Shown here: positions 24,724 to 61,875 of the stretch, piece after piece | Layout: every line of letters begins with the position of its first letter | Position numbering within the stretch: position 1 is the first letter of the stretch | Sequence record: MZ443783.1 | Length of the DNA: 64,000 nucleotides | Reading direction: 5' to 3' (one strand) | Position numbers and translations under genes: made by a program | Notes under the pieces: model-generated | Databases searched by the model: none | What the model saw: the letters and a program-made list of their open reading frames with translations, nothing else | Told to the model about the DNA's origin: nothing

Positions 24724-24776
24724 ACACGTAGACGCTACATGTCGTAGCGCATACAACTACTGCCGAGGGGCACACA

Positions 24777-25151
24777 ATGACTGCTATCAAATTTGATTCT
24801 GTTTACGACATTCTTACCGAGATGGACGAATGCGCCAGAGATGTTGACTTCACCAAGACTCTTGGCTTCGACCCAATCAAAGTAGAAATTCTGCAATGCG
24901 GTCTGCAAGAAGATCTCGGCGTGTACGCGTGTTTGCCGAACGCCACAAACATTCTGATTGCCGATTCGACTGACCTGTTCTCTGAGCACCTTAAAGGTGA
25001 CGGCGAAATCACAGTCTGCCGAATCTTAACGCCTAACGGCGAGATGTTCGATGAGCCAGAAGTCGAAGTCAAACAGCTTGGCACGTTCAATGATTTTGAT
25101 TCAGCTTATGCTGCATGGTTAGCGGCGATTAACGAAGAAATCGACAAATAA
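24777..25151 (+). CDS. hypothetical acidic early protein (124 aa)
   Basis: GAGGGG RBS in a hairpin. Confidence 0.8.
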   Translation: MTAIKFDSVYDILTEMDECARDVDFTKTLGFDPIKVEILQCGLQEDLGVYACLPNATNILIADSTDLFSEHLKGDGEITVCRILTPNGEMFDEPEVEVKQLGTFNDFDSAYAAWLAAINEEIDK

Positions 25152-25196
25152 TAGGTCAAAAGCGCTGTAGCAATGCAGCGCTATTTATCGTACTAT
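25144..25196 (+). promoter_or_regulatory. early promoter cassette 2
   Basis: ACAAATAATAGGTCAAAAGCG, 26 nt, TACTAT. Confidence 0.7.
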
Positions 25197-25248
25197 GTAA
25201 TCTCTGGCGCAATGATGCGCACATACAACACTTGCCGAGGGGCACACA

Positions 25249-25950
25249 ATGAAAGCAGCAAACTTTGACGTAGCATTTAACGCGAAAGACGAAGCAACCT
25301 TAAACGCATACGCAGCGAAAATTCTCGAAGCGCTTAACGCTCTGGGGCGTTATGACCTGAAGATCAATATCATCTTCGGCACTGACCCGTTCGGCGAACG
25401 CCCTGATTTTGTGAATGACCCGAACGGTTTTCGCGTTACACAGAACGGCGAAGAAATTTTTGATATCTACACGCCGACAGAAAAACAGATTGAAGGCGAT
25501 GCGTCAGATGCTTTCATCTACGCTTCATGGGCCGACGGCGAAGCGCCGTGGGGTAAAGACGTGTCAGACAATGACATTGCAGAAATCGCCGAACACCTGA
25601 ACGCTGCAATCCCGCGTGTCGGCCGTGTATTCAACGAATCTGATCGTCAGATGCTGCAAAAACTCGCCGACACTTTGAACGCTCGTATGGATCGTACCGA
25701 TGCGCGAGTGATCGTAACGAACGGCGCCGAAGACGATCTCATTGTTATGGTTGTTGGTTACGACGAAGAAGAAGATGAAGTCAGTGATGAATACGGCTTC
25801 TTCTTGAGCCTGCCGTACACCGATGAAGGCGGCACAGACGAGAAATACAGTCTGCACTACGCTGGCTACCCAGGCGTGAACGACCACTCATATAGCTCTG
25901 CTGACCTCGACGAGATCTCAGAAGAAATCGAAGCGCTCGATCTGCTCTAA
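25249..25950 (+). CDS. hypothetical acidic early protein (233 aa)
   Basis: Leader nearly identical to that of 24777. Confidence 0.8.
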   Translation: MKAANFDVAFNAKDEATLNAYAAKILEALNALGRYDLKINIIFGTDPFGERPDFVNDPNGFRVTQNGEEIFDIYTPTEKQIEGDASDAFIYASWADGEAPWGKDVSDNDIAEIAEHLNAAIPRVGRVFNESDRQMLQKLADTLNARMDRTDARVIVTNGAEDDLIVMVVGYDEEEDEVSDEYGFFLSLPYTDEGGTDEKYSLHYAGYPGVNDHSYSSADLDEISEEIEALDLL

Positions 25951-25963
25951 TCACTAACTAACT

Positions 25964-25987
25964 GCGGGGTTACGGCCCCGCTTACTT
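25964..25987 (+). terminator. probable terminator
   Basis: GCGGGG-TTACGG-CCCCGC-TTACTT. Confidence 0.55.
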
Positions 25988-26012
25988 CACAATCTAATTG
26001 AGAGAACATGCC

Positions 26013-26627
26013 ATGAACCTTATCAATACTTTTTTCGTTAAACGCTCTTACGCTTCTCTGGCCGCAGGTAACTTTGCAATCGACGCCAAGCACGTACAAG
26101 AGCTGGTTGAATGTGAGTGTATGATCGTACACGTAGACACAGGCCACCGTAATGCGTTCGCGTTGAAGAACATCTCTATTACGCCTATCGACGAGCACAA
26201 CGTTCGCATTACGTTCGACCCGCTGACCGATGCACACGCGATGCCTGTGACTGTCATGCCGAAAGATCTGAAAGGCAGCATTGAAGTCTACGGCATGTAT
26301 GTAGAAGACCTGAAAGACGTGCCACGTTTCAGCGTGTCGAATGACGCATCAGGCAACAATCCAAATCTGCTGTCGCTTGACCTCGAAAGCCGTCAGCGTT
26401 TCGTTCAATACTTCGGTGGCATGTGTACGCTGACTGACCTGTGCCTGACTCTGCATGAGAAAGGCATTCACGTTGTCGATATCCACAACAACGTTAAGCA
26501 GCACGATCACGGCGTTGGCGTTTTCACTCAGCGCTATCGCACCGCATTCGAACTCAACAAAGACAATGGCATTAAGCGCCACAACGACGACTATCCTGTT
26601 TTGGCTCGCATGACCGTTTTAATGTAA
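26013..26627 (+). CDS. hypothetical protein
   Basis: In-frame ATG 26013 within ORF 25998-26627. Confidence 0.7.
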   Translation: MNLINTFFVKRSYASLAAGNFAIDAKHVQELVECECMIVHVDTGHRNAFALKNISITPIDEHNVRITFDPLTDAHAMPVTVMPKDLKGSIEVYGMYVEDLKDVPRFSVSNDASGNNPNLLSLDLESRQRFVQYFGGMCTLTDLCLTLHEKGIHVVDIHNNVKQHDHGVGVFTQRYRTAFELNKDNGIKRHNDDYPVLARMTVLM

Positions 26628-26636
26628 ACACACCTT

Positions 26637-26659
26637 GCCTCGCATACCGCGGGGCTTTT
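26637..26659 (+). terminator. intrinsic terminator
   Basis: GCCTCGC-ATACC-GCGGGGC-TTTT. Confidence 0.65.
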
Positions 26660-26675
26660 CTATTTGGAGAATGCT

Positions 26676-26936
26676 ATGCACCACTATACGCGTGAAGAAC
26701 TGGAAGAAATGAACTGCATCGAACTGGACCAGCTTGCAAACGAGCGCGGTCTGCTGGAAGATAAAGACGATGACGACGATCTGGACAATGACCTGCTCAT
26801 CGGCATGATTCTTGACGACCAGAACGATACTCGCGTTGCTGACGAGATGGAAGAAGATCGTCAGCAACATTATCGTCGCCTCGATGAAGAACAGCAGGCG
26901 CGTGAGGGCAAAGACGGTTCAGACGACTATTGCTGA
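26676..26936 (+). CDS. very acidic small protein with a Rho-N/HeH-like module (86 aa)
   Basis: ELEEMNCIELDQLANERGL...NDLLIGMILDDQ; GGAG RBS. Confidence 0.75.
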   Translation: MHHYTREELEEMNCIELDQLANERGLLEDKDDDDDLDNDLLIGMILDDQNDTRVADEMEEDRQQHYRRLDEEQQAREGKDGSDDYC

Positions 26937-26993
26937 TTAAGTAAACCAAGAGGCTGCCAGCGCTGGTGGCCTCACTCACAAGAAGGAGCAATA

Positions 26994-27341
26994 ATGAAGC
27001 GCAAAGTAATATTGATAGACACGGCAGAGTTTCACAACCAACCCATCTCGTTTCCATCGATCATTGATTTTGACGGCATAGACACGGTGGTGTTTGTTGT
27101 GAAGTCAAATGGTGAGCACGGAGGCATTGATTATCTTGGTGCGTACTGTGCAACACAAATGACAGTTGGCTATACGAAAGTGCCTATGGCGCAGACGTTG
27201 AATATCGACGAATATGGCGTTGTGCCACTCGAAGATGATATGAAGGCCAAGCTACTTCACACCAACCAGTACGTTGACGAAGTGCCTGAGCAACATCAAA
27301 GCATCTACAGCGCGAAGACTGAAATCCTCTTCGCAGAGTAA
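26994..27341 (+). CDS. hypothetical protein (115 aa)
   Basis: AGGAG RBS. Confidence 0.75.
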   Translation: MKRKVILIDTAEFHNQPISFPSIIDFDGIDTVVFVVKSNGEHGGIDYLGAYCATQMTVGYTKVPMAQTLNIDEYGVVPLEDDMKAKLLHTNQYVDEVPEQHQSIYSAKTEILFAE

Positions 27342-27345
27342 CCAC

Positions 27346-27374
27346 AAGGGCTGCCATTATTGGTGGCCCTTTTT
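27346..27374 (+). terminator. intrinsic terminator
   Basis: AAGGGCTGCCA-TTAT-TGGTGGCCCTT-TTT. Confidence 0.8.
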
Positions 27375-27376
27375 CA

Positions 27377-27387
27377 TTTCTGTAAAT
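27377..27387 (+). promoter_or_regulatory. TTTCTGTAAAT motif
   Basis: Directly after a terminator, about 32 nt before ATG 27419. Confidence 0.5.
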
Positions 27388-27418
27388 ACCTCGTACATTC
27401 ACTGATGCGAGAAACACA

Positions 27419-27790
27419 ATGCGCCGCTTTCTGACAGTCTTCAATGTCACTCAACAGGAGTTTGACGAACTACGCTTCTATCGCCACAAGCTCAACATCG
27501 TAACCACTTTGCGCCGCACTCACGGCATACTGCTGGTGGTACGTGAGACAGGCCGTGTGTTCAATGCCTCAACCGCCCTGTATCAACAAGCCGAAGAATA
27601 CGACTTGCGCCGCGTAGACTTCACTGGTCCTGTCGAAGTGACCAAAGAGTTAGGCGAACGCTTCTCTGAACTCAAGCAGGCAATCGCAAACAACCTGCAG
27701 GATAAAAGCATCAACTACTTTGGCCGCACTCTCTCGCTCGACGAAACTCAAGAGCGATTGTACGCCACTAAACTGGAGATACTCGTATGA
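27419..27790 (+). CDS. hypothetical protein (123 aa)
   Basis: ORF in operon. Confidence 0.7.
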   Translation: MRRFLTVFNVTQQEFDELRFYRHKLNIVTTLRRTHGILLVVRETGRVFNASTALYQQAEEYDLRRVDFTGPVEVTKELGERFSELKQAIANNLQDKSINYFGRTLSLDETQERLYATKLEILV

Positions 27791-28029
27791 CAACAATCGG
27801 TGCCTCGCTTGGTGCTCGCTTCGCTGCCACATCTTCGGAGCGTTGTTCTTCCCGCAAGAAAGCCAAGCCGCGCAACAAGACGCTGACTGCCGCAACAACT
27901 GCCGACATTCATAGCGCTGTCGAACGCCTGGCAATCAAGCTGGACACAACACGCTCGAACGTAATCGAGATCGCACTCAAAGAACTGTGCGCGAAACATG
28001 GCATAGCGATAGGCGATACCGATGAGTAA
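27787..28029 (+). CDS. ribbon-helix-helix (CopG/Arc-like) DNA-binding protein
   Basis: TLTAATTADIHSAVERLAIKLDTTRSNVIEIALKELC fits the RHH pattern; GGAG RBS. Confidence 0.65.
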   Translation: MTTIGASLGARFAATSSERCSSRKKAKPRNKTLTAATTADIHSAVERLAIKLDTTRSNVIEIALKELCAKHGIAIGDTDE

Positions 28030-28369
28030 CTTTATCTACTGTAGGCTGTACGGCGTTCAACATCGCCTGAATGTAGAGGGCATCGACTTCTCACAACAGA
28101 CCGTATCGTATATGGTGTCTGCCTCTGATATGCTGCGCATGATGCCGCGCATTCAGGTAGGTGCGGCCTATGACACGTACACGCCATACAATGTGCTCAA
28201 GGCAGGACGTGCTGACTTCAAGATCAAAAAGATTGAGAAGATAAGCGCTGACGAGTGGCGCTATTCGTTTGTTGATTATGCTGATACGCCGTTCAACACA
28301 ATTCTTAAACGGAGGTCGTATGTCGATAGGACTAGTGAAAGTAGTAGGCTTAAAAGACAAAGCACCTAA
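28022..28369 (+). CDS. hypothetical protein (115 aa)
   Basis: Overlap coupling. Confidence 0.7.
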   Translation: MSNFIYCRLYGVQHRLNVEGIDFSQQTVSYMVSASDMLRMMPRIQVGAAYDTYTPYNVLKAGRADFKIKKIEKISADEWRYSFVDYADTPFNTILKRRSYVDRTSESSRLKRQST

Positions 28370-28952
28370 GGGATTTGATTTAGATATCTGTCCTGTATCA
28401 CGCGACGACGATTGGTGGTCGCTGAGTCCATTCTATCTCGGGCCTTGTCGTACACCGAGCGGCATTATGTTCCACAACATGGAGAACATGTGGCAGTATA
28501 GCAAGGTGTACGAAGAACACCTAGTCAACTCGAATGATTTGTTTCATGGTGAAGTATCTGCCGAGTGGTGGGAATGGCATTTGAAAGGCAGTACAACCGA
28601 ACAGGCGCATCGCTATCCAGCGGGGAAGGGTCGAAAGGCCCTGTTCTCGAAATGGGGCGACTTGCGCCTTTCGTACATTCCCGCACGAAAACAAATCTAC
28701 GTGCCCGAATATGCGAAGCTGGTAATCCACAAGCCGAAGTTTAAACGCCTGCTTAAGGATTATAAGAAAGGTGCCAAGATAGTCCTCAGAGATTATGACA
28801 CCTACGATATTCAAAAGGCCTATCCAGATTCTCGTAGTCCGTGGCTGTCGGCCATTCAAAACGAGAACGCAAAATTCGGCCATGCGTTTGTCATTGCATT
28901 GGCCTTGATGTTCCACGAACGACCACTATGGTACAATCAATGGGTAATCTGA
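28320..28952 (+). CDS. conserved hypothetical protein, DUF6939-like (possibly NADAR-related)
   Basis: LSPFYLGP...ENMWQYSKVY...ARKQIYVPEY motifs; GGAGG RBS before ATG 28320. Confidence 0.6.
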   Translation: MSIGLVKVVGLKDKAPKGFDLDICPVSRDDDWWSLSPFYLGPCRTPSGIMFHNMENMWQYSKVYEEHLVNSNDLFHGEVSAEWWEWHLKGSTTEQAHRYPAGKGRKALFSKWGDLRLSYIPARKQIYVPEYAKLVIHKPKFKRLLKDYKKGAKIVLRDYDTYDIQKAYPDSRSPWLSAIQNENAKFGHAFVIALALMFHERPLWYNQWVI

Positions 28953-28996
28953 CCAGATACGTAGCCTGCATTGAGTTGTCTACGCGCGAAGGAAAT

Positions 28997-29260
28997 ATGA
29001 ATCTGCCGATTCTACCTCGCTGTGAACTACAAGCATTTGTTCTTGACGGACACACGCAAACTAAAGTGCCTATCAAACTTAATGCCACAAACGTCATCAA
29101 TGTGATGGGCAAAACGTGTGGTAGTCTGCAATGGTTTGATTGTGTGAATCTGCTCATATGGTCATCGTTTGAGCCAGGCAGGTTCACGCTGTATATTGAA
29201 CGTGCTTGCAAAACAGACGAGACTACAGACGACCAGCAATCTGCTGAACTCTGCAAATAA
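28997..29260 (+). CDS. hypothetical protein (87 aa)
   Basis: AAGGA RBS before ATG 28997. Confidence 0.6.
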   Translation: MNLPILPRCELQAFVLDGHTQTKVPIKLNATNVINVMGKTCGSLQWFDCVNLLIWSSFEPGRFTLYIERACKTDETTDDQQSAELCK

Positions 29261-29305
29261 TAGGCTGAAATAGCCATTCAGTCAGATACGCTCCTATGAT
29301 ATACT
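29253..29305 (+). promoter_or_regulatory. early promoter cassette 3
   Basis: GCAAATAATAGGCTGAAATAG, 26 nt, TG-A-TATACT. Confidence 0.85.
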
Positions 29306-29350
29306 ATACGTGAGCGCAGTGCTCATAAAACTAACGCTGAGGAGCGTATC

Positions 29351-29800
29351 ATGACTACTTTATCTATCGTTGATTTGAAGACCCCTGCGGAATTTACTAC
29401 CCACCTGACTTTCGGTCACATGGAAGAACTGCGAGCCAGCCTTGAGCGCGCCTTAAATCGTTCTGATCTCGAGGTGTATGTTGAATGCGATTCGAACTAC
29501 ACACTCGAAGAAGCAAACACCGACGGTCCTGACCAGCTGGTGGGCGATCATGAATGTATTAACGTTCACGTTCGTTATGCGGGAATGTCGTTCGATGAAG
29601 CGACGGCGAAAGGCGTGTGGGATATTTTACTGCAAACCCCGCACGAAGATAATAGCATGTCCGAGTGGTCTAACTCATACATCATGTATGTGGCAGATGA
29701 AAACCTCGACGCGCTGGAAGAAGTGACGATAGAAAACGGGAATCCTCGTATGATGGAAACTCTCGTTGATCGTATTAACTACTGGCTGCCAAAACTCTAA
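29351..29800 (+). CDS. hypothetical acidic protein (149 aa)
   Basis: GAGGAG RBS in a hairpin. Confidence 0.8.
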   Translation: MTTLSIVDLKTPAEFTTHLTFGHMEELRASLERALNRSDLEVYVECDSNYTLEEANTDGPDQLVGDHECINVHVRYAGMSFDEATAKGVWDILLQTPHEDNSMSEWSNSYIMYVADENLDALEEVTIENGNPRMMETLVDRINYWLPKL

Positions 29801-29841: not shown

Positions 29842-29866
29842 AACACCATAAGCTGAGGAGCTTAAC

Positions 29867-30225: not shown

Positions 30226-30249
30226 CAACCTGTTCTGAGGAGAACAACA

Positions 30250-30603: not shown

Positions 30604-30668
30604 TTGTTGCTCGCAGGTTCTTACGAGAGCCTGCTGTCAACATAACCCTATAAGCTGAGGAGCTTAAC

Positions 30669-33103: not shown

Positions 33104-34164
33104 ATAAGACCGTTGGCCTGATGATTGATGAAGACGTAATGAACTGGCTGGACATGCTGCTTGCGGGTGAACTGAGCAATGTCTTAGGTGCGTTGAACAA
33201 TATCGTGTACGCCCGCCGGCAGGAACTGTCTGTCGAACGTCTGACCGAAGACGAAGATATTGGTGCGCTCTCTCATAAAGAGCTGGAGATCATTCTGCGT
33301 TACGCTGCTCCTAATCATGAGTACGATACGACGGTGCTGTCGAATGAACAACTGCTTCGTCTGGCGATGGATGCACAGGGCATCATCTCCTACACATTGC
33401 CGAGTCATAGTTCGCCTATCATGGTTAAACGTGCTTTCGCTAACGGCAACGTGTGCTCACTGCTTGGCAGTTTTTCGAATCGTGCTGATATCGTCATGGC
33501 TGTACATCACTGGGAATGTGGTCTGTCCAACATCTCGCTCGACGGTGTGACTGGTAACGACGAACGCCCAGACGAACAAGGCATGTACCTGTGCTACGAT
33601 GAGCACAAGCAAGTTCGTTATGGCCGACTGTTCAAGAATGCCAACGACGGCTGGACATTCAGCGAGTATTATTCTGCTGGTGGATCTACTACGTGGCTTG
33701 AAGCGAGTCCAAACAATGCGCTTGATGGTGACGACCTGCCGATCAGCCTGCTGACTAACTGGGTATTCGTTGTTCCAGATCGTTCGCCGTCTATTCTCAA
33801 ACCTGCTGAGGGATTCAAGCGTCTGTCCGACACACAACGCATCTTCCTGTATCTGCGTAGCCTGAGTCCTCACGTTAAAGCTGAGATCGTCGCACACTTC
33901 GACGGCGTTCTGGACAATCGATCATTCACCTCTGTCGATCAGATTGGTCGCCTGACTGAAAAAGACTGGCGCGATGCTGCGATTGCTATCGGTGAAGAAG
34001 AAAGTGGCCAAGAAGGTCCTCACTACTGGGATGATCGTAGTGCGTGGGCTTGCTTCGTCGCTGTGCTCAACTCTCTGTGCTTCGACATGGACACACGCGA
34101 CTTCCAACCGCAGTATGAGTACCAGGCCAACGACGACACTATGGAAGAAGACAACAATGGCTAA
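33100..34164 (+). CDS. hypothetical protein (354 aa)
   Basis: GGAG RBS; long ORF. Confidence 0.8.
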   Translation: MNKTVGLMIDEDVMNWLDMLLAGELSNVLGALNNIVYARRQELSVERLTEDEDIGALSHKELEIILRYAAPNHEYDTTVLSNEQLLRLAMDAQGIISYTLPSHSSPIMVKRAFANGNVCSLLGSFSNRADIVMAVHHWECGLSNISLDGVTGNDERPDEQGMYLCYDEHKQVRYGRLFKNANDGWTFSEYYSAGGSTTWLEASPNNALDGDDLPISLLTNWVFVVPDRSPSILKPAEGFKRLSDTQRIFLYLRSLSPHVKAEIVAHFDGVLDNRSFTSVDQIGRLTEKDWRDAAIAIGEEESGQEGPHYWDDRSAWACFVAVLNSLCFDMDTRDFQPQYEYQANDDTMEEDNNG

Positions 34165-34690
34165 ATCACTCGGCGTATACATGACTTACATTCTGCGTCA
34201 CAAGCCGCAGGATATCGGAATCGCAATGGACACCCAGGGTTGGGTGTCTGTTCTGGACTTCTTGCAGAAAGCAAAGTATGTCAAACAGGTCACTCTCGAA
34301 ATGCTGATTGCAGAAGTTGAGGCGGACGAGAAAGGCCGTTTCGAGTTCAACTCTAACCGCTCCAAGATTCGTTGTGTGCAAGGCCATTCGGTTGAGAACG
34401 TTATTCTGCATCTTGAACCGTTCACTGACCTTGCGCCTTTGTATCACGGTACGGCAGATAAGAACGTGGCATCAATCATGCACGAAGGTATCACGAAGCG
34501 GAAACGCAAACACGTCCACATCAGCCGTGAAATCGAAACAGCCGAGAACGTTGGTCGTCGTCACGGTGCACCTGTTGTGTTTCAGATTGATACACAGGCA
34601 ATGATCACTCACGGCTATAAGTTTTACCGAGCCGAGAATGGAGTCATCCTGACCGATCACGTACCGTCCAGATATATCAAGTTGGTGTGA
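34157..34690 (+). CDS. kptA: RNA 2'-phosphotransferase (Tpt1/KptA family)
   Basis: YILRH, DTQGWV, RFE, IRCVQGHS, LYHGT, RKHVHIS, GRRHG, NGVILTDHVP. Confidence 0.93.
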   Translation: MAKSLGVYMTYILRHKPQDIGIAMDTQGWVSVLDFLQKAKYVKQVTLEMLIAEVEADEKGRFEFNSNRSKIRCVQGHSVENVILHLEPFTDLAPLYHGTADKNVASIMHEGITKRKRKHVHISREIETAENVGRRHGAPVVFQIDTQAMITHGYKFYRAENGVILTDHVPSRYIKLV

Positions 34691-35111: not shown

Positions 35112-35154
35112 AGAGATCAACGCTAGACACTCGTTTAGCTACTTACATGAGGAT

Positions 35155-35496
35155 ATGTATATGAAAAAGTCAAAAGTTAAAGCAGAAGTTGTTGCACCTA
35201 CTATCGAAGGTCGTTCATTCACGTTATATAACGCCTCGCCTGTTCCCGAATTGTCCGTAACACCGTTTGCAGGCCGTGATGCGTTTTTACCTCTACTGCG
35301 TAAAGTTCAGGATGCTGCTCAACTGGAGCGTATTCGTGGTATGTCCTGTTGTCCGTACTGCCGTGAAACAATGATGTTAGGCGAGTACACCAAAGACAAC
35401 TGGCTGTGGTCATATTCATATCAGCACATGATCGAACACCACAACGTAACGCCGTCCGCAGAATTTATTGCATACGTCGAAGCCGCTTCTAAATAA
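35155..35496 (+). CDS. hypothetical protein with CPYC and YQHMIEHH motifs
   Basis: GAGGA RBS. Confidence 0.75.
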   Translation: MYMKKSKVKAEVVAPTIEGRSFTLYNASPVPELSVTPFAGRDAFLPLLRKVQDAAQLERIRGMSCCPYCRETMMLGEYTKDNWLWSYSYQHMIEHHNVTPSAEFIAYVEAASK

Positions 35497-35516: not shown

Positions 35517-37043
35517 ATGAACATGAAAAAGATTAAACACACTTTCCGCCTGACCGATTTGGTACACATCGCAAAACTTCCTGCAGGTATGTCCAAATTC
35601 CACGAAGGCTCGGATGCTATTGTTGTCGGCCGCAACGAAGATAGCGACCAATATATTCTGCACGTTAAAAACGTTGGTGAGCTTTCGTGGTACGAAGGTA
35701 AATCACTGACGTTGATCAGTCACAACAACGGCGAACTGCTTGACCAGTGGGAAGCAGGTGACTACGGTCGTGATAAGAAAAAGAAACGCAAGATCCCAAA
35801 AGAACTGCGTAACTTCACGGCTATCTTGCCTGTGACCTGCAACGCCGATTGTTCGTTCTGCCCTGAGAAAGAAATGGAGCAGAAAGCCAACCAGAAAGAA
35901 TGGCAAGATGGTTTGATTGCAGAGATCAAACGCATGTACAAGAAAACGAAGTTCGACCACGTATCAATCAGCGGCGGCGAACCGACGTTGCGTACAAAGT
36001 TCCTGTTCGAAACGATCGACCGTATTCAGAAAGAAACGCCGATCAAGAAAGTCGGTCTGACTTCTAACGGTCAGTTCCTTGAGAAACCAAACAGTACGTT
36101 CGACTTCTTAGACCGTAACACTACGCCTGAGATGACCAGCAAGCTGTCGCATCTGAATATCAGTATGCACTCGTTCAACCGCGACCTTGCGAACAAGATC
36201 ATGGGCGTGAACTACAAACAGACTCTGGAAGATTTAGTTCGCTTCCGCCGTCAGCTCGGCCGTGACGTTAGCTTCCACATTAACTTCGTGATCAATGACC
36301 AGACTGGTTCGATTACGGAAGAGTTCAAGAGGGCCGCAAACTTCATGCGCGCCAATCCATTTATCGACGTTGTGTTCCGTGTTGATTACAACGACGTTGA
36401 ACTGTCGAAAGCTCTGCGTGACTACGCTATGGAATATGAAGCGTGGCAGGAAGCAAGTCGCATCGCTGTGGCTACTCGCAAGAAGTGCAAAGTGAAAGAG
36501 CCTCGCGCACCTCACATTGTTCAGAAGTTTGATCGCTTCTTCGGCGGCCAGAATCTCGATGACGTTGAAAGCGCTTGGACTACAGGTTGCCCGTCGTGCT
36601 TCACTCATGCGTCGAACGTTGTCAATAACAGTCGCGCATATTTGAAAGCGTCTTCCTACGAACCTAATGAAGACGAAGCGGAGTACACTGAGCTGGTGTA
36701 TCACATGGACGGCGCTCTGTATTGGGACTGGACTCGTAATGACCCTGTACCAGCTCCGCGTAGCAAGCGTTTTGACTTCGAGATGAAAGAAGAAGAAGAC
36801 AAGGCGTGGGAACATGGTTCTGTGGCCGAAGCGATTAACGCCAATCGTTGTTCATTTGGACCTGCTGCACCGCATCACTGCTCTTACGATTCTACTGGCA
36901 CAACGGTCGCACCGAAAGCTGCGAAGAAACCTAAGAAAGTGACACCCGCCAAGAAAACGAAGAAGGTGGGTGGAAAAGTTTCGAGCGTTCCTGGTGCTGC
37001 TCCTGGTGTTTGCGGCTACGGCAATAGTCGTTGTGGTTATTAA
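35517..37043 (+). CDS. radical SAM protein (508 aa) with extra N- and C-terminal regions
   Basis: CNADCSFC (CxxxCxxC), SGGEPT, TSNG, NISMHS. Confidence 0.88.
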   Translation: MNMKKIKHTFRLTDLVHIAKLPAGMSKFHEGSDAIVVGRNEDSDQYILHVKNVGELSWYEGKSLTLISHNNGELLDQWEAGDYGRDKKKKRKIPKELRNFTAILPVTCNADCSFCPEKEMEQKANQKEWQDGLIAEIKRMYKKTKFDHVSISGGEPTLRTKFLFETIDRIQKETPIKKVGLTSNGQFLEKPNSTFDFLDRNTTPEMTSKLSHLNISMHSFNRDLANKIMGVNYKQTLEDLVRFRRQLGRDVSFHINFVINDQTGSITEEFKRAANFMRANPFIDVVFRVDYNDVELSKALRDYAMEYEAWQEASRIAVATRKKCKVKEPRAPHIVQKFDRFFGGQNLDDVESAWTTGCPSCFTHASNVVNNSRAYLKASSYEPNEDEAEYTELVYHMDGALYWDWTRNDPVPAPRSKRFDFEMKEEEDKAWEHGSVAEAINANRCSFGPAAPHHCSYDSTGTTVAPKAAKKPKKVTPAKKTKKVGGKVSSVPGAAPGVCGYGNSRCGY

Positions 37044-42514: not shown

Positions 42515-43495
42515 ATGCGTTTTGGTTTCGCCTGCAAATTGCTTGACGCAAACAACAAACAACCATTCACGAATAAGAGCCTTAGCTATAAACATTTCTC
42601 TGCGCTGTCTGCTACTGACCAACATGCAAAACTTCTGGACGTTGTTACGCACAACCTGACTTCGTTGCTCAACATGATTAAACACGTTGGCCGACTGCGT
42701 ACAGACCTACGTATGTTTCGAATCACCAGTGAGTTGCTTCCACTCTACACTCACCCTAAAGTGTTTCACATGTACATGCGCCATGACGTTGTTACTCTTA
42801 CTGAGTCGCTACTCGCCTTGTGTGGTGAAGCGGCTCGACGCCATGACGTGCGATTATCATTTCACCCAGGTCAGTTCACGGTACTCGCATCTGACCGACC
42901 TGATGTTGTCCAGAACTCAATAGCCGAACTTGAGTACCATGCGTACTGTGCATATCACATGGGATATGGTCGCCGCTTCCAAGACTTCAAAATCAATATT
43001 CACCTTAGCGGTAGACTTGGTGCTTCTGGTTTCAGACAAGCGCATTCGAAACTTTCTGATCGCTGCCGAAACATGTTGACCGTAGAGAACGACGAAATCA
43101 CTTCCAGCCTCGAAGATGTTTTGTGTCTGGCAGACATATGCCCGATTGTCCTCGACATTCATCATCACTGGGTAATGACCAACGAATACATACAACCGAC
43201 CGACGATCGTGTTCAGCGTGTCATTGATTCTTGGCGCGGCGTAAGACCAGTAGCGCATTACTCTGTGTCGAAGCCTGAGTTCGTACCGTCGCGCGGACTC
43301 CCTGATCAGAACAAGCTGTCCGCTAATCGAATGCAGTTACGTGCTCATGCTGATTACTACCACAACGAAGACGTAAACGAGTGGGCCACTAGTTTCACTG
43401 ATTTTGACCTTATGTGTGAGTCAAAAGCGAAAAATAGGGCTAGACTGAAACTGGCGTGTTTTAGCGTCAACTCTGCAAATAATTGGACAAAATGA
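42515..43495 (+). CDS. uvsE: UV damage endonuclease UvsE/UvdE
   Basis: MRFGFAC, HNL, FRITSELLP, RLSFHPGQF.VL.S, INIH, LTVENDE, LDIHHH, H.S, AHAD, MCESKAK. Confidence 0.93.
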   Translation: MRFGFACKLLDANNKQPFTNKSLSYKHFSALSATDQHAKLLDVVTHNLTSLLNMIKHVGRLRTDLRMFRITSELLPLYTHPKVFHMYMRHDVVTLTESLLALCGEAARRHDVRLSFHPGQFTVLASDRPDVVQNSIAELEYHAYCAYHMGYGRRFQDFKINIHLSGRLGASGFRQAHSKLSDRCRNMLTVENDEITSSLEDVLCLADICPIVLDIHHHWVMTNEYIQPTDDRVQRVIDSWRGVRPVAHYSVSKPEFVPSRGLPDQNKLSANRMQLRAHADYYHNEDVNEWATSFTDFDLMCESKAKNRARLKLACFSVNSANNWTK

Positions 43496-45410: not shown

Positions 45411-45715
45411 TGAAAGGAAAGAAGTTAGACGTATTTTTGCAGCAACGCACGGCAATGAACAAAATCGCGTCCAGCCCGCAAGACTGGGAGACGTACAAAG
45501 AAATGCTGTTGAACATACGGCTTGCCGTTGCTGTTGACCCTCGACCTGATGCTGCTGTACGCCACTTAGCACGTACATGGCACGCCGAAAAGAAATATGC
45601 GCTCCCTGTCTGTCAGGCTACGCTTCTGAAACTGATGACGTTGAAGAAAGCAAACCAAACGCTTGAAGAAATGATCGCGCTTTACATTGACCTTGAGGAA
45701 GGACCGAAGAAATGA
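45410..45715 (+). CDS. hypothetical protein
   Basis: GAGGA RBS, TGATG coupling. Confidence 0.7.
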   Translation: MKGKKLDVFLQQRTAMNKIASSPQDWETYKEMLLNIRLAVAVDPRPDAAVRHLARTWHAEKKYALPVCQATLLKLMTLKKANQTLEEMIALYIDLEEGPKK

Positions 45716-56315: not shown

Positions 56316-56365
56316 AAAAGCGTAGCGATGCTGCGCTTTTTCACTTATGTCTGAGGAGACAACAA

Positions 56366-56830: not shown

Positions 56831-56831
56831 C

Positions 56832-57515
56832 ATGAAACCTGACTACACTCTGCTTAAACGTAGTAAGACGCACGAAGATGTTTTCGCTTTCGTGTTTGAC
56901 GGCGAGTTGCTTGTTCAATTCAAAGCTGTCCAGTTGCATAAAGCTCTGACCGAAACGCTCAAAGCAAACTGCATCAATGAAGTCGATATCCTGTGGCGTG
57001 ACGGTACGCGTACGGTCCAACAACTGGTTGTGCATCATACGCGTGAGTTCGTACAGTTCGACACTATCGTCCACAACTACAGCGTGTGCCTGATGCTTCG
57101 CGCACAAGGCGTTGGTCATTCGCTTGCTGTGCCTGTCGATGTTCGTTCTATGTATGATGCCGACGGCCTGATGATCAGTGAGATTCGCATTGATAGTGAA
57201 ACAGTCGCTGATCTGATGCGTCACATTAAAACCACGCCATACATTGATCCAGAAGAAGATGACGATGTTGGCGATATGGACGAAGATGATGATTGGGATG
57301 ACGATGATCTCGATCCGACCGAGTTCCACGATATCGAAACAGAATCTATTGCCGATAACAAATTGCAGATTGGCGACTGGGGATATCGCGCCCACGACTG
57401 GGCGATCACTCTGACCGACGAACAGGTAGACCGCATTCACTTCCTCGAAGTCGGCATTGACCCTGACATTGAACTGCCTATTGCAGATGATGCTAAGAAG
57501 GACGCATTCTTCTAA
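56832..57515 (+). CDS. hypothetical protein with an acidic C-terminal half
   Basis: AGGTG RBS before ATG 56832. Confidence 0.78.
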   Translation: MKPDYTLLKRSKTHEDVFAFVFDGELLVQFKAVQLHKALTETLKANCINEVDILWRDGTRTVQQLVVHHTREFVQFDTIVHNYSVCLMLRAQGVGHSLAVPVDVRSMYDADGLMISEIRIDSETVADLMRHIKTTPYIDPEEDDDVGDMDEDDDWDDDDLDPTEFHDIETESIADNKLQIGDWGYRAHDWAITLTDEQVDRIHFLEVGIDPDIELPIADDAKKDAFF

Positions 57516-57706
57516 TGAAAACGATCAACGAACAAGTCAACGAATTGAAACAGCGCGGCGTGCTTATCATCGAAGAACACCAGAAGCATACGCTGCCAGA
57601 TTTGACCTTCACGCTCGACTGTATGTGTCTGCCTCATACGAAGCGTGAAGTAGAGACAACCACGCGCGGCCGCGTTGTTAAAATTCGCCTGACAAACATT
57701 CACTAA
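57515..57706 (+). CDS. hypothetical protein (63 aa)
   Basis: TAATG coupling. Confidence 0.65.
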   Translation: MKTINEQVNELKQRGVLIIEEHQKHTLPDLTFTLDCMCLPHTKREVETTTRGRVVKIRLTNIH

Positions 57707-57719
57707 CTTTTGTGGTCTT

Positions 57720-57794
57720 GGCCCGCCCGTCCAGAAATGCTCACCCCCAATGAGGTGTCTCGCGCAGGGGCATGACGGTCACCGGGTCCTTTTT
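57720..57794 (+). ncRNA. candidate structured RNA or long terminator
   Basis: Nested stems 57720-25/57783-88, 57727-31/57774-78 and 57737-42/57768-73, then TTTTT. Confidence 0.35.
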
Positions 57795-57850
57795 AGAGCG
57801 CACTACAGAGTACGCTGTACAAAGTAAACAACAAAACAGGAGGCTGTTAT

Positions 57851-58195
57851 ATGCGTTTCACCGAAGTATCAAAAGACGCACAGGTTGCGTTAATGTCTAG
57901 CGCACTTGCGGGAGTAATTGAGGCATTCACCCGCGAAGAAGATGATGAAGGCCGCAAGATTCTAGTTCTGGCCCTCAAGCAAGTCGGTCTGACGGTAGAT
58001 GAGTTCAGCGCACTTATCTCTGACTTGTCGCCAGAAGTTGAGCTTGAGATCGTTCGCGTTATGGAAGCTGCTGATGCCGAAGCGGATGAAGAAGACGCAG
58101 ACAGCGAACTCGACACGATGGAAGAGCGCCCAGGCAACCTGAACGATGCGCCGAACATTAATGCAGACGGCTGGGAGAATCTCAAAGATGAGTAG
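57851..58195 (+). CDS. hypothetical acidic protein (114 aa)
   Basis: AGGAGG RBS. Confidence 0.8.
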   Translation: MRFTEVSKDAQVALMSSALAGVIEAFTREEDDEGRKILVLALKQVGLTVDEFSALISDLSPEVELEIVRVMEAADAEADEEDADSELDTMEERPGNLNDAPNINADGWENLKDE

Positions 58196-58391
58196 TCAAG
58201 ATGATGTGAATGGTAGAATTGCTGCGGCCGACGAGCAACGTCAGAAAGAGCGTGAATCACGCTATGATGATTGGTCGATTGACGACCTGCGTGATGCTCT
58301 GCTTGAGAATGGTCTTGTATTTGACGGTGAAGACGTAGACGACTACAGCCGCGCAGACTGTATCAGACTGCTACTGGCTGATGGCTTCTAA
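58188..58391 (+). CDS. small acidic protein with a HeH-like module (67 aa)
   Basis: YDDWSIDDLRDALLENGL...SRADCIRLLL; GGGAG RBS. Confidence 0.7.
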   Translation: MSSQDDVNGRIAAADEQRQKERESRYDDWSIDDLRDALLENGLVFDGEDVDDYSRADCIRLLLADGF

Positions 58392-58444
58392 GCACAAAAC
58401 TGGACAAAATCGTGGTTGTCTCAAATAGCTGCCTGAACTATACT
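58392..58444 (+). promoter_or_regulatory. early promoter cassette 9
   Basis: GCACAAAACTGGACAAAATCG, 26 nt, TATACT. Confidence 0.85.
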
Positions 58445-58450
58445 ATATAG

Positions 58451-58648
58451 ACAGCGAGACAACTATCTCTCTGTATGCCTTTGTTATTGCTTGACCGTGT
58501 GTTTTTCGATTTTCCCGGACGCACGGTCCTTTTTAAAGTGGACTTCGCTGAGGTTCCTTTAAAAAGGGTTCGATACCCTTTGAGCGCGTCGGGCTTTACG
58601 CGGTTTCCGCCTTACGTGCTCTCATGCTAAACCGCAAAGGAAATTGAA
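58451..58648 (+). promoter_or_regulatory. ~200-nt structured 5' leader or attenuator candidate
   Basis: Several hairpins, one followed by T5; alternative pairing near the SD. Confidence 0.4.
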
Positions 58649-59407
58649 ATGCCTACTACTTCACGTCCTAAGACAGAAGACAAGTTTTCCCGTGCTCGCG
58701 CCGCCAAAAACTCACCTGAGCGTCAGGCCGCGGCCACCAAGAAAACGCCACGAGGTCCTTCCTCGGTTCGTCCTAAATCAACGGCAGATCGTGAGCCTAA
58801 GATTCGTGACGAGGAGCGTGTGTACAATCTCGTACATGCAATTCTGAGCGCGTGGAAAGCTGATGTGGGTCATGCCGAACACACGGCAGCCTCTGCTGGT
58901 ATCATCAAAGTGTCTCGCCGTAAGATTGAAGGTGCCTTGCGTGACCTCAAGAATACGCGCTTCACTAAGATCCCGACGCTCATTAATGACGTCCTCGTGT
59001 ATAACGAAGTCTGCAATGAGTTCGGGCAGTGGGTATATGTCGAGCATGACAGTCCTGATTGGATTTTCGTGCGCTTGCCTGAAAACAGCACACCTGTGAT
59101 TCGTGCTGATATCAGCTACGACAAGACAGGCAAAACGTCTGCGTCTGTTTCGACTTCCAGCGAAGTGTTGCTGGAGGACTTTGACGAAGACGAAGAAGAT
59201 GAAATCCCTGAGAACGTCGAATATGACGACGAGGATGATTCTGATGTGAACGAAGAAGAGGACGACGAGGAGGAGTACCAGTCCTGGTCCCTCAGCCAAC
59301 TTCAAAACTTTGCTAAGGCCGAAGGTTACATCTGCATCAAAGATGAAGGTTGGAACGACCGCCAGACGCTTCTTGCTCGCATCCTGAATAAGGGAGCAAT
59401 CAAATGA
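58649..59407 (+). CDS. hypothetical protein (252 aa): basic N-terminus, acidic linker, C-terminal HeH-like module
   Basis: AAGGA RBS, TTG start. Confidence 0.78.
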   Translation: MPTTSRPKTEDKFSRARAAKNSPERQAAATKKTPRGPSSVRPKSTADREPKIRDEERVYNLVHAILSAWKADVGHAEHTAASAGIIKVSRRKIEGALRDLKNTRFTKIPTLINDVLVYNEVCNEFGQWVYVEHDSPDWIFVRLPENSTPVIRADISYDKTGKTSASVSTSSEVLLEDFDEDEEDEIPENVEYDDEDDSDVNEEEDDEEEYQSWSLSQLQNFAKAEGYICIKDEGWNDRQTLLARILNKGAIK

Positions 59408-59853
59408 GTCTGACTATTCGCTCTGCTGCCGAAACTGCTGCAATGATCATTGAAAACGTCACTCTCTACTCTCAAGAGAAGGGGCACGAATATCCGCTGC
59501 CGCGCTTTAAGATGCCCGACAATGCGATACGTCGAATCTCTGGTCATGCTCGCGTTCTGCCTGAAAGCTATATTGAGCAACTGTCTATCGAGCTGCAACA
59601 AATCGACTGGATGATGCTGCGGTATAACGCCGGCGAGTTCTTGTTCATGCACTACGATATCCCAAAGAACTGGACGCGACTGAGTGCGAAGCGTGTGGTC
59701 CCTAATGACGACCCTGCCGCTGAGTACGATACGTGGACGCTTCCTGAACTTCAGGGCTTCGCTCAACGTAACGACTTTTTGCAGCCTGACGAAGAGGGCT
59801 TCAACGATAGAGCGTCACTGATTCGCGCTATCATGCTAGGCGAGACCCATTGA
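59404..59853 (+). CDS. hypothetical protein (149 aa) with a C-terminal HeH-like module
   Basis: C-terminal ~40 aa clearly similar to that of 58649-59407. Confidence 0.8.
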   Translation: MSLTIRSAAETAAMIIENVTLYSQEKGHEYPLPRFKMPDNAIRRISGHARVLPESYIEQLSIELQQIDWMMLRYNAGEFLFMHYDIPKNWTRLSAKRVVPNDDPAAEYDTWTLPELQGFAQRNDFLQPDEEGFNDRASLIRAIMLGETH

Positions 59854-59872
59854 GTAGGGGGAAGATAATCGA

Positions 59873-60019
59873 ATGAACAAATCTAAGCGGGACGCAGAAG
59901 ACCCCGACATTGCTAAAATGCGCAAGCGTCTGGTAGATGCGAAAATCATCAAGCCAGAAGCTGCTGTGAAGCTGTCAAGCAATGACATTGTGAAGCTGTA
60001 CACTTACTACAGCGTATAA
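59873..60019 (+). CDS. small protein (48 aa)
   Basis: MNKSKRDAEDPDIAKMRKRLVDAKIIKPEAAVKLSSNDIVKLYTYYSV; GGGGGA upstream; below the track cutoff. Confidence 0.6.
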   Translation: MNKSKRDAEDPDIAKMRKRLVDAKIIKPEAAVKLSSNDIVKLYTYYSV

Positions 60020-60067
60020 GCAATAATGAGCAGGCAGTGAACGTGCTGCCTGCTATCTGCGAAGTAT

Positions 60068-60121
60068 GCAGAAAACTGGACAAAATCGTGGTTGTTATCT
60101 GAAAGCAACCTATGCTATACT
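60068..60121 (+). promoter_or_regulatory. early promoter cassette 10
   Basis: GCAGAAAACTGGACAAAATCG, 27 nt, TG-C-TATACT. Confidence 0.85.
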
Positions 60122-60184
60122 TAATGCAGACGCAATATCGCGTCGGCAAGCAAATCAAACAACAAATACTGAGGAGTATTAATC

Positions 60185-61792
60185 ATGGCACGTCTGGAAA
60201 CTAACACTAACCTGGTTGGCAAAACTATCATCCTGCTGAACGGCACCAAATCTAAAATCGAAGATGCAATCGCGTCTGGCTATAAAGTGAAGGGCCAGTC
60301 AAAACGTATCGCCACCCGCTGCGTCATCAAAGAAGGTTCTCACTTCCGCGAAATTGAGCGCATGAACATGAGCCAGCTGGAAGATACTGGTGAAGGTTAC
60401 GTTAAACTGAAAGATGCGAAAGCGTCTGGTAAGAAAGCTGGCGCGAAAGAGAAAGAGCCGAAAGCGTCTGGCAAGAAGACTGGCGGCAAAGCTACGGCCA
60501 AAGAGAAAGAGCCGAAAGTTCGCCGTAAGTCTTCTAAAGAGCAAGGCGATGAGTATCAGGCTCTGGCGAAAGAAATCATCAAAGGCGGCAAACGTGCTGC
60601 GCCAGTTGAAATCGACGAGATCGATGGCGACCTGACTGATACCGTTGCTCAACGTCTGGTAGACGTACTGAACAATACCGAAATCGCCAAGCTGTGCGCT
60701 GACAACAAAACGCCGATCGCTAACGCCATCGAAGTTGCTTACGGCGCTGAGTTCGCACCTGAAACAAACGTCATGCAGATCACGCTGAGCCTGCAATACG
60801 CGAAGCCTGTTAAAATGCAGTCATCTTCTACGCTGGAAAACGCCGATGCAATCGCGGCCCGTGCTAAGAAAATGATCGCGCCGAAGCTGTCTAAGAAAAT
60901 CGCTAAGGCGATTCGTGAAGCGTTCGGCCTGGAAGACGCCGCCGAGCTTGAAGCTGGTACCGTGTTGTTGTCTGACGGCGCTGAGTTCGTCTTCTGCGGC
61001 GAGAGCGCGAAGCACCTCGGCAAAGCGCTGCTGTATGTTGTAGAGACCGACAAGTTCAAATCTGTTGTAGGCTCTGCGCTGGCTGATTACGAAATTGATC
61101 AGGAAGAAGAAGAGGAAGAAGAGGAAGACCTCGAGGAAGAGGAGTCTGAGGAGGAAGAAGAAGAGGAGGAGGAGGAAGAAGAGGAGGAGGAAGAAGAAGA
61201 CGGCGAAGAAGAAGACGGCGAAGAAGACGACGGTGAGTCTGACGATACTGAATACCAGTATGTGGCCGTGACCAAAGATCATACCAACATGATCAACAAG
61301 AAAGTCACCGCTAAGTATCACGCCGCGCTGGCTGAGCGCTTCAACACAACCGAAGAAGCTCTGGTCCCTGGCCTCGTGTTGACTGACGGCGAAACAACGT
61401 TCGCTTACCTGGGCTGTGATAGCAAAGGTGGTCTGCTGGTCATCGACGTTGAAGCTGAGGAGAACGAAGAAGACGTTCTGCTGTATAGCAAAGCCGATAT
61501 CAAAGAACTGACCGACTTCAATCCTGTGCTGGATGACGTAGAAGGCGCTGCCGATGATGAAGGCGAAGAAGAAGACGGTGAAGAAGAAGACGGTGAAGAA
61601 GAAGACGGTGAAGAAGAAGACGGTGAAGAGGAAGAAGACGACGAAGACTTCGACTTCGATGATGTTCCTGCCGTTGACCTGAAAGATCTGTCCGAAGACG
61701 AACTGCGTGACCGTGTCGTTGAAGCCGGCCTGACCACCGTGCGTAAAGCTGACAAAATGAACGCGGCTCAACTGCGCAAGCTCCTGAAATAA
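60185..61792 (+). CDS. highly acidic multidomain protein (535 aa) with poly-E tracts
   Basis: GAGGAG RBS; two internal repeat domains; paralog of 61876-63126. Confidence 0.85.
   Translation: MARLETNTNLVGKTIILLNGTKSKIEDAIASGYKVKGQSKRIATRCVIKEGSHFREIERMNMSQLEDTGEGYVKLKDAKASGKKAGAKEKEPKASGKKTGGKATAKEKEPKVRRKSSKEQGDEYQALAKEIIKGGKRAAPVEIDEIDGDLTDTVAQRLVDVLNNTEIAKLCADNKTPIANAIEVAYGAEFAPETNVMQITLSLQYAKPVKMQSSSTLENADAIAARAKKMIAPKLSKKIAKAIREAFGLEDAAELEAGTVLLSDGAEFVFCGESAKHLGKALLYVVETDKFKSVVGSALADYEIDQEEEEEEEEDLEEEESEEEEEEEEEEEEEEEEEDGEEEDGEEDDGESDDTEYQYVAVTKDHTNMINKKVTAKYHAALAERFNTTEEALVPGLVLTDGETTFAYLGCDSKGGLLVIDVEAEENEEDVLLYSKADIKELTDFNPVLDDVEGAADDEGEEEDGEEEDGEEEDGEEEDGEEEEDDEDFDFDDVPAVDLKDLSEDELRDRVVEAGLTTVRKADKMNAAQLRKLLK
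61565..61624 (+). repeat. coding tandem repeat (GAAGAAGAAGACGGT)x4 = (EEEDG)4
   Basis: Four perfect 15-bp units; related units at 61190-61234. Confidence 0.9.
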
Positions 61793-61875
61793 ACCTGTAG
61801 TATCGCAACACTGAATAATGTACGCCTCAGACAGGGGCGTACATCTGACAACTAAGCTGATTGAGGAATCACACT

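Follow-up and report, generated by a model that had tools for sequence, protein, structure and literature searches.

Results

Hairpins at the Shine–Dalgarno sequences of pEa_SNUABM_28

The 64,000-nucleotide (nt) stretch of DNA analysed here, referred to as the window, is 100% identical to positions 186001–250000 of the genome of the Erwinia jumbo phage pEa_SNUABM_28 (S28; genus Alexandravirus; MZ443783.1), and the elements under study are short hairpins that enclose the Shine–Dalgarno (SD) sequences of a set of its genes. The S28 genome is a circular record of 267,143 base pairs (bp) in which all genes are annotated 'hypothetical protein', and it consists of a + strand block, which starts at about 188 kb and runs across the record origin as far as 45 kb, and a − strand block of 143 kb. 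Pfam matches in the window comprise UvdE, dUTPase, a lytic transglycosylase (SLT), RecA, Tpt1/KptA, radical SAM, Acb1 and a DksA/TraR zinc finger, among many small ORFans. The initial annotation of this DNA had listed nine genes preceded by an SD hairpin; all nine positions and sequences proved correct, each hairpin lying 2–4 nt before the annotated start codon.

The hairpins share a common anatomy. A stem of 4–7 bp, whose sequence is specific to the gene, closes a four-base loop, RAGG, which is the SD core. Only the A-G-G of the loop is invariant, the first loop base being G, A or T; most sites have U-A as their closing pair, others C-G or G-C, and the deeper pairs have no common sequence. 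The 3′ arm usually starts with AG to give the SD sequence AGGAG, 5–7 nt from the AUG, and the hairpin typically ends 2–4 nt before the AUG, so that the last two SD bases and most of the spacer lie within the helix and the AUG lies outside it.

All sites are on the + strand, and genes are referred to by their start position in the window. Two identical hairpins, TGCC-GAGG-GGCA, at 24761–24772 (predicted free energy at 37 °C, −5.1 kcal/mol) and 25233–25244, each end 4 nt before the ATG, of gene 24777 (124 amino acids, aa) and gene 25249 (233 aa), respectively. ACGCT-GAGG-AGCGT (29334–29347) lies 3 nt before the ATG of gene 29351 (149 aa). TAAGCT-GAGG-AGCTTA occurs twice, 2 nt before the ATG of genes 29867 (105 aa; hairpin at 29849–29864) and 30669 (135 aa; 30651–30666), and between these two TGTTCT-GAGG-AGAACA (30231–30246) lies 3 nt before the ATG of gene 30250 (117 aa). 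Further along the window, TGTCT-GAGG-AGACA (56348–56361), AATACT-GAGG-AGTATT (60165–60180) and TGATT-GAGG-AATCA (61858–61871) each end 4 nt before the ATG, of genes 56366 (154 aa), 60185 (535 aa) and 61876 (416 aa). Genes 29351, 56366 and 60185 are the first genes after the promoter-like cassettes at 29297, 56307 and 60113, described below. Among the sites missing from the earlier list are AACAG-GAGG-CTGTT (57835–57848), 2 nt before the ATG of gene 57851 (114 aa), and GTTATT-GGAG-AATAAC (22543–22558), which has a GGAG loop and lies directly before the ATG of gene 22559 (86 aa). A further GAGG-loop site, the twelfth if the doubtful one at 45691 (see below) is counted, is TTATCT-GAGG-AGATAA, found on the + strand about 1.2 kb past the window end, before a 998-aa gene.

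Frequency and genomic distribution

A mechanical scan of both strands of the window for GAGG flanked by at least 4 Watson–Crick pairs returned 11 of 127 GAGG on the + strand and 1 of 129 on the − strand, and in all 11 cases on the + strand an annotated ATG follows the end of the hairpin by 2–9 nt. GAGG occurs at −21 to −5 in 32 genes, of which 11 have a stem of at least 4 bp and 8 one of at least 5 bp. When the 3′ flanks were permuted among those 32 genes, the mean numbers were 0.55 and 0.34, respectively, with a maximum of 4 in 5000 permutations, and this null is a generous one because two stem sequences occur twice. The earlier view that the hairpins are unlikely to have arisen by chance is therefore borne out. 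The same holds for the shuffled control that had been proposed with it: generic hairpins of at least 6 bp in the region −30 to +3 number 8, against 1.9 ± 1.4 in dinucleotide shuffles.

The two strands of the whole 267-kb genome contain 1143 GAGG, from which about 4.5 GAGG-tetraloop hairpins would be expected; 16 were found. Of these, twelve precede + strand genes, and all twelve fall within one stretch of about 40 kb (genome 210.7–251.3 kb); the whole-genome scan found none before genes of the 143-kb − strand block or of the replication block. The hairpins are thus much more frequent than chance and occur in a single gene class only. As had also been suggested, a covariance model was made, from 57 distinct hairpin variants; run on the 267-kb genome, it recovered 11 of the 12 GAGG-loop + strand sites, missing a doubtful site at 45691 (see below), together with one weak extra match and no convincing new member. 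This sole extra match, TTCC-TGAGGT-GGAA at genome 24932–24953 (14.3 bits; E about 3.6), lies 2 nt before the ATG of gene 00040, within the upstream coding sequence (CDS) and outside the 40-kb hairpin region. Rfam, at its gathering threshold, gave no match in the window, and the literature that could be searched held no prior description of the motif (CUGAGGAG, with the SD in the loop).

Conservation in related phages

Orthologues of the hairpin genes were located by protein similarity in 13 related genomes, namely eight Alexandraviruses, a metagenomic contig, Y3, Yoloswag, Yersinia phage fHe-Yen9-02 (Yen9) and Dickeya phage JA29; a fourteenth genome, pEa_SNUABM_5, was scanned separately and stands outside the orthologue counts. 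A stem of at least 4 bp around an NAGG or GGAG tetraloop is kept at 80 of 90 orthologous sites, compared with 4 of 95 sites at control genes with long leaders. In 43 orthologue pairs with less than 90% protein identity, aligned with the loop as anchor, nucleotide identity was 0.88 in the 5′ arm, 0.95 in the loop and 0.95 in the 3′ arm, falling to 0.54 in the adjoining 20 nt upstream; in the coding sequences of the same pairs it was 0.67 at third codon positions and 0.86 at first and second positions. No role of the 5′ arm besides complementarity is evident. A conservation profile anchored on the ATG had shown no excess conservation, an artefact that arises because spacer lengths differ by 1 nt; anchoring on the loop gives the clear result above.

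Pairing is maintained by compensatory and G-U changes, and the hairpins are under purifying selection. Indeed, a comparison of related phages, among which the initial annotation had proposed to look for covariation, yielded independent compensatory changes at genes 29351, 56366 and 60185, reaching phages with 33–43% protein identity, as well as U-G variants at genes 25249 and 30250 that pair in the sense (+) strand only. The most extensive record is that of gene 60185, where the arms are TAATACT/AGTATTA in Yoloswag and TAATTCT/AGAATTA in Yen9 (42% protein identity) and the site reads TATTTCT-TAGG-AGAAATA in JA29 (33–36% protein identity), amounting to two compensatory double changes across these three phages and no break. 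At gene 56366 the outer pair exists in four states: U:A in S28, A:U in Y3, C:G in pEa_SNUABM_5 and Yoloswag, and U-G in a second Yoloswag copy. The site of gene 29351 has the arms AAGCT/AGCTT in S17 and S3, a compensatory change from C:G to A:U. Orthologues of gene 24777 keep the hairpin with either a GAGG or an AAGG loop, and that of gene 25249 becomes ATGCT-AAGG-GGCAT in S17 and the metagenomic contig, so that the weakening of a C:G pair to a U-G wobble coincides with a newly gained outer A-U pair. At gene 30250, the 3′ arm in S35 is AGGACA, which again gives a U-G wobble, and in S17 the site has the TAAGCT allele, three pairs having changed on both sides; conversely, the TGTTCT allele is found at gene 30669 in S7, the two alleles thus changing places at orthologous positions from one phage to another. 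The metagenomic relative of gene 22559 has GTTATTT-GGAG-AAATAAC, a two-sided insertion of T and A on opposite sides. Other sites have changed little: the hairpin of gene 29867 is kept in 8 of 8 orthologues, that of gene 57851 is identical in seven relatives whose proteins are 42–93% identical, and that of gene 61876 is identical in seven relatives (55–98% protein identity) and missing from Yoloswag, Yen9 and JA29. The losses comprise one replaced 5′ arm (gene 30669 in Alexandra, with the junction at the loop), two one-sided insertions (gene 22559 in Alexandra and S2) and several sites in the most distant phages.

Each of the five inner pairs is present in 49–56 of the 57 distinct variants and takes three to five standard pair types, and 75% of cells across sites are paired, compared with 47% after shuffling. 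The covariation score was 0.718, against 0.160 ± 0.021 in shuffles (0 of 500 reached it) and at most 0.193 in slid registers; as the S28 sites were ascertained by their pairing, this score mainly describes covariation between sites, and the orthologue counts are the unbiased test. The design spans Alexandravirus, Yoloswagvirus, Rivsvirus and Salmondvirus, together with the related phages Y3 and Yersinia fHe-Yen9-02.

Several further candidates stand apart from this set. Of three looser versions noted earlier, the one at 15442 is not kept in relatives, looks like chance and was rejected as a member of the family, and those at 35155 and 38638 have a single close orthologue each for comparison. 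The former of these two is TACAT-GAGGAT-ATGTA (35144–35159; predicted free energy at 37 °C, −1.4 kcal/mol), a doubtful site before gene 35161 with an alternative in-frame ATG, 35155, in its 3′ arm. Also doubtful, and likewise not on the earlier list, is CCTT-GAGG-AAGG (45691–45702; −2.2 kcal/mol), 9 nt before the ATG of gene 45712 and within the upstream CDS. A 7-bp hairpin, TTTCTTT-GGAG-AAAGAAA, over the SD of gene 19334 (19315–19333) and directly after a terminator resembles the family but was rejected, since no relative has it intact. Like the site at 15442 it looks like chance, having probably arisen from the terminator T-run, and it indicates that counting hairpins in a single genome overcalls them.

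Predicted stability and leader composition

The predicted stability of the S28 hairpins at 37 °C ranges from −1.9 to −5.5 kcal/mol. Seven of them lie between −4.2 and −5.5 kcal/mol, a clustering that comes about because short stems are GC-rich and long stems AU-rich. For the 57 variants the predicted mean at 28 °C is −5.6 ± 1.4 kcal/mol (range about −3 to −7.7), the predicted gain in stability from 37 to 28 °C being about 1 kcal/mol. Of the 57 variants, 55 have the tetraloop hairpin as their predicted minimum-free-energy fold, and this hairpin is also predicted in context. Unfolding the region −18 to +10 in context is predicted to cost 9.5 kcal/mol at hairpin genes, as against 8.3 and 9.6 kcal/mol for other genes, and the predicted range is narrower (7–12 versus 3.5–18 kcal/mol). 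Strong repression in cis was rejected on this ground, the predicted opening energy being no higher than that of other genes; an opening cost that is not raised and varies little fits standardization rather than shut-off.

The 14 nt upstream of the hairpin are composed of 45% A, 29% C, 19% T and 7% G (74% A+C), compared with 17% G in controls, and are unpaired in the predicted folds. A second GGA was found in none of the 11 leaders within 50 nt upstream.

Promoter-like cassettes and repeats

Our own motif alignment brought out a cassette in which a spacer of about 24 nt separates a conserved (T/A)GAAAT(A/C)G box from an extended −10 box, TGATAyAmT; after the −10 box comes a GC-rich hairpin, with which the transcript would begin. 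Transcription is predicted to start 6–8 nt after the −10 boxes. Its −10 boxes (first base of TG) are at 24715, 29297, 35103, 43520, 46942, 52160, 56307 and 60113 on the + strand of the window, all of them intergenic; a further −10 box lies outside the window at genome 258591. A normal −35 element would lie closer to the −10 box than the GAAAT(A/C)G box does, and the latter may thus be an UP element or an activator site. The leader at 24715–24760 (+ strand) may serve as an example, with the −10 box TGATACAAT, the 5′ hairpin GACGCTAC-atgtc-GTAGCGC and the A/C-rich linker ATACAACTAC. An SD hairpin is present at five of the eight genes directly behind cassettes, and the remaining hairpin genes sit behind another hairpin. 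Jumbo phages of the PaBG/Lu11-like group, which includes Alexandra, AD1, Y3 and Yoloswag, have been described as using host RNA polymerase together with phage sigma-like factors (PMC7412058).

Identical modules of 19–21 nt stand before different genes, TGCCGAGGGGCACACAATG occurring twice and TAAGCTGAGGAGCTTAACATG twice. Beyond these, long direct repeats of intergenic regulatory sequence (76–100% identical; families D1–D7) precede dissimilar proteins, examples being the pairs 24651–24695/29233–29277, 29803–29841/30185–30225 and 24747–24779/25219–25251. Paralogy of the downstream genes was rejected as the source of the identical modules, the proteins not being similar. A different repeat is found in the leader of gene 19867, where the 19-nt sequence CTCGATAGGCAATACGCCA occurs in two exact copies, at 19804–19822 and 19838–19856, 15 nt apart; the second copy ends right at the SD of gene 19867, and an operator or another repeat element is possible.

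Genes of the hairpin region and its surroundings

The proteins encoded behind hairpins have no detectable similarity to one another. The ten in the window gave no Pfam or named PHROG function, and PDB sequence searches with three of them found no relatives of known structure; low-complexity acidic stretches accounted for the only matches in these searches. Elsewhere in the window, matches were located for Tpt1/KptA (34157–34690; RNA 2′-phosphotransferase, E 2e-44), radical SAM (35523–37043) and UvdE (42515–43495), and an Acb1 anti-CBASS family protein, a 2′-5′ RNA ligase-like (2H) match and a PD-(D/E)XK nuclease are also encoded. The presence of Tpt1/KptA, Acb1 and the 2H match suggests, by sequence similarity, functions in RNA repair and anti-defence.

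The + strand block outside the window has Pfam matches to DnaB, topoisomerase, thymidylate synthase and methylases. In this replication block (genome 1–45 kb and 250–267 kb), two proteins match intein splicing and Hint domains, and C5 and N6-adenine DNA methyltransferases, thymidylate synthase, dCMP deaminase and a DUF1611 P-loop protein are encoded as well. Intergenic gaps that are long for this genome (144–257 nt) occur in the window at 57707–57850, 58392–58648, 60020–60184 and 24607–24776. The 257-nt gap before gene 58649, which has neither a promoter cassette nor an SD hairpin, could harbour a small RNA or an unannotated small gene.

Discussion

One uniform design, with the SD core in a tetraloop, a tuned stability and an upstream A/C-rich landing strip, is reused at a dozen unrelated genes of S28. 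It is reasonable to read these hairpins as translational control elements, the natural interpretation from sequence and the one offered in the initial annotation, which linked them to early translation. Their location at the SD, the covariation, the selection acting on them and their position in a cassette-bearing region all speak for this part of the proposal, whereas nothing was found in support of its other part, a recognition site for a protein or nuclease.

The hypothesis that we favour, with a probability of roughly 0.45, is that the hairpins act in cis as a portable translation-initiation module made up of a tuned SD hairpin and an upstream standby stretch. The 30S subunit would have to melt the hairpin in order to pair AGGAG with 16S rRNA. 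The single-stranded, A/C-rich and G-poor stretch, usually placed between the 5′ hairpin and the SD hairpin, would serve as a ribosome standby site, from which a waiting 30S subunit could capture the SD when the small local helix breathes, and the G-poor, GGA-free leader would leave the SD a single defined pairing partner. The outcome would be a defined, moderate and context-independent rate of initiation wherever the cassette lands. The genes served would be those that come first behind strong host-type promoters or that follow other hairpin genes, in an ORFan-rich and probably early region. As it is compact and repeated, the module may move between unrelated genes by recombination. CA-rich single-stranded tails of 16–18 nt have been found to raise translation strongly from a hairpin-sequestered ribosome-binding site (RBS) (PMC5934652). 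A mechanism of this kind, acting in cis only, could account for every observation made here; in it we infer the lowered or standardized translation, the standby role of the A/C-rich stretch and the early timing.

A number of points weigh against this hypothesis. The A/C linkers measure 8–14 nt, less than the optimum of 16–18 nt that has been reported for standby tails. The SD hairpin is missing at three of the eight genes that come directly after a cassette, and so it is not obligatory for that class. That the cassettes are early host-polymerase promoters, and the hairpin genes early genes, is probable from promoter-like motifs only, and a scan with the plain sigma-70 consensus gave no enrichment over shuffles and missed the cassette promoter family. 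Moreover, a class-specific trans-acting factor explains the restriction to one 40-kb class just as well, and the strong conservation of both arms, beyond what pairing alone calls for, is compatible with recognition of sequence or shape.

These last points lead to the alternative that survives best, although we regard it as unlikely: the hairpin would be a class-specific operator on early mRNAs for a trans-acting repressor, a structure-specific endoribonuclease or a host protein that tunes or shuts off early translation. The spread of the hairpins is regulon-like, with 12 sites in one cassette-bearing 40-kb stretch and none before many other genes with long leaders; their geometry is uniform, the tetraloop always being on RAGG and the end 2–4 nt before the AUG; their conservation exceeds that of neighbouring coding positions; and the predicted opening energy is unremarkable, so that simple occlusion may not be the point. 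There is also a precedent in phage T4, whose RegB cuts GG/AG in early ribosome sites with an activity that depends on structure (PMC3014915). What such a factor would recognize is nevertheless hard to see, for the sites have no common sequence besides the SD core, which is conserved anyway, and differ in the first loop base (G, A or T) and in the closing pair (U-A, C-G or G-C). Pfam searches of 183 proteins scanned in the + strand blocks, with about 142 ORFs of the − strand block outside the scan, identified no RegB, RegA, CsrA, KH or S1-type family, and the flanking consensus of RegB, GGAGRAYARAA, is absent, GGAG itself missing at some sites. Slightly more doubtful again is the specific form of this idea in which the SD-tetraloop hairpin is a structural tag that distinguishes one temporal mRNA class from the messages of the host and of later phage genes, and by means of which a candidate phage repressor or endoribonuclease would switch off the whole class at once; were it true, the tag would be a structure-based analogue of the early shut-off by RegB and RegA in T4, in a jumbo-phage lineage for which neither family was found among the + strand proteins scanned.

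Binding of host CsrA/RsmA to the hairpins, with repression or activation of these phage mRNAs, is very improbable. In most sites a GGA is found at or beside the loop of a short SD hairpin, and the Erwinia, Dickeya and Yersinia hosts carry CsrA/RsmA. CsrA can moreover act on hairpins that sequester the SD (PMC7492729). However, the two TGCC-GAGG-GGCA sites and several orthologues with TGCC-AAGG-GGCA lack any GGA. The register of GGA is +2 in 8 of 11 sites, −1 at gene 57851 and 0 at gene 22559, and at +2 the A of GGA is in the closing pair and not in the loop; a second GGA for bridging by the dimer is present in 0 of 11 leaders. The earlier remark that the loop register differs from the CsrA hexaloop thus holds, and the definition of a CsrA site fails here.

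Readings in which the hairpin operates at the level of DNA or of the other strand, with its position at the SD incidental, were ranked low as a poor fit, and we give them little credence. They include a recombination or cruciform site of mobile cassettes, a DNA-palindrome operator and a weak antisense terminator. The cassettes are repeated before unrelated genes and apparently recombine, the replacement junction in Alexandra is at the loop and one hairpin is terminator-like on the − strand, but the T-G variants pair in + strand RNA only (they are C-A mismatches in antisense RNA and mismatches in DNA), the loop is always on the SD core with the 3′ end 2–4 nt before the ATG, and the stems are too weak and mostly without a T-run on the − strand. 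Least probable of all are RNA thermometers coupling early phage translation to temperature, for although the hairpins occlude the SD and are predicted to be about 1 kcal/mol more stable at 28 than at 37 °C, they are perfect helices without the typical mismatches, and extrapolation of the predicted energies would put their melting far above growth temperatures.

If the hairpins are, as we favour, a module acting in cis, they would represent a natural, portable and insulated RBS, with a bearing on how newly acquired ORFans are expressed and on the design of synthetic RBSs; if they are read by a trans-acting factor, they would belong to a new early-gene shut-off system in jumbo phages. In either case one gene class can be recognized by a simple sequence feature in genomes whose genes are nearly all annotated as hypothetical.

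Comparison with known systems

The hairpins differ from those recognized by CsrA/RsmA, with which they share a short hairpin over the SD and a purine-rich loop: GGA is not conserved, its register is wrong and there is a single site. Of two defining features of CsrA targets, the 11 sites as a set therefore lack a GGA presented in the hairpin loop, and no leader has the other, two or more GGA. The targets of T4 RegB are comparable in that they mark the SD of early genes, with GGAG in many of them and in intergenic leaders. RegB sites consist of GGAG with an A-rich 3′ consensus, and structure protects them from cleavage (PMC3014915). GGAG is present in 8 of 11 hairpin sites (absent at genes 24777, 25249 and 61876), and the seven bases that follow it are CGTATCA, CTTAACA (two sites), AACAACA, ACAACAA, TATTAAT, GCTGTTA and AATAACA; none of these sites presents the consensus GGAGRAYARAA with an unpaired GGA, the A and G being paired in the predicted hairpin.

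The T4 genes e, soc, 49 and I-TevI likewise hold the SD of a phage mRNA in a local helix (PMC3014915). Control of these genes is temporal, a late promoter within the 5′ arm giving rise to hairpin-free transcripts (PMC3014915). In S28 the 5′ arm is only 15–20 nt from the ATG and a transcript starting inside it would lack the SD, which should make a promoter arrangement of the e/soc type impossible. Unlike the T4 hairpins, moreover, those described here are weaker and form a multi-gene family.

On the hypothesis of a module acting in cis, the phage sites would be close in mechanism to the RBS hairpin of the MS2 coat gene with its standby site (de Smit and van Duin model; Sterk, Romilly and Wagner 2018, PMC5934652), which also combines a short RBS hairpin with a 5′ single-stranded CA-rich stretch. 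Two features of a standby-assisted structured RBS, an RBS within a local hairpin and a single-stranded flank, are present in the predicted folds of the phage sites, and by analogy with MS2 one might expect efficient but structure-limited initiation. In contrast to the MS2 coat gene, the phage sites hold the SD core in a tetraloop, leave the AUG outside the helix, have shorter linkers (8–14 nt) and recur before at least 12 unrelated genes in a DNA phage.

In their genomic arrangement they resemble the PeSL cassettes of T4-type phages (PMC2839356, PMC4122927), in which a sigma-70-like promoter is combined with a stem-loop, SD and start codon, the whole being repeated before ORFans and apparently exchanged by recombination; these cassettes mediate shuffling (PMC2839356). 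S28 has the same kind of unit, a repeated promoter, stem-loop, SD and ATG before unrelated ORFans. However, the stem-loop of PeSL is a terminator near or inside the promoter, and its SD has not been described as lying in a hairpin, whereas in S28 a second, covarying hairpin encloses the SD. What is known, then, is the single SD-occluding hairpin; what is new is a multi-copy, covarying module with the SD in a tetraloop that is shared across jumbo-phage genera.

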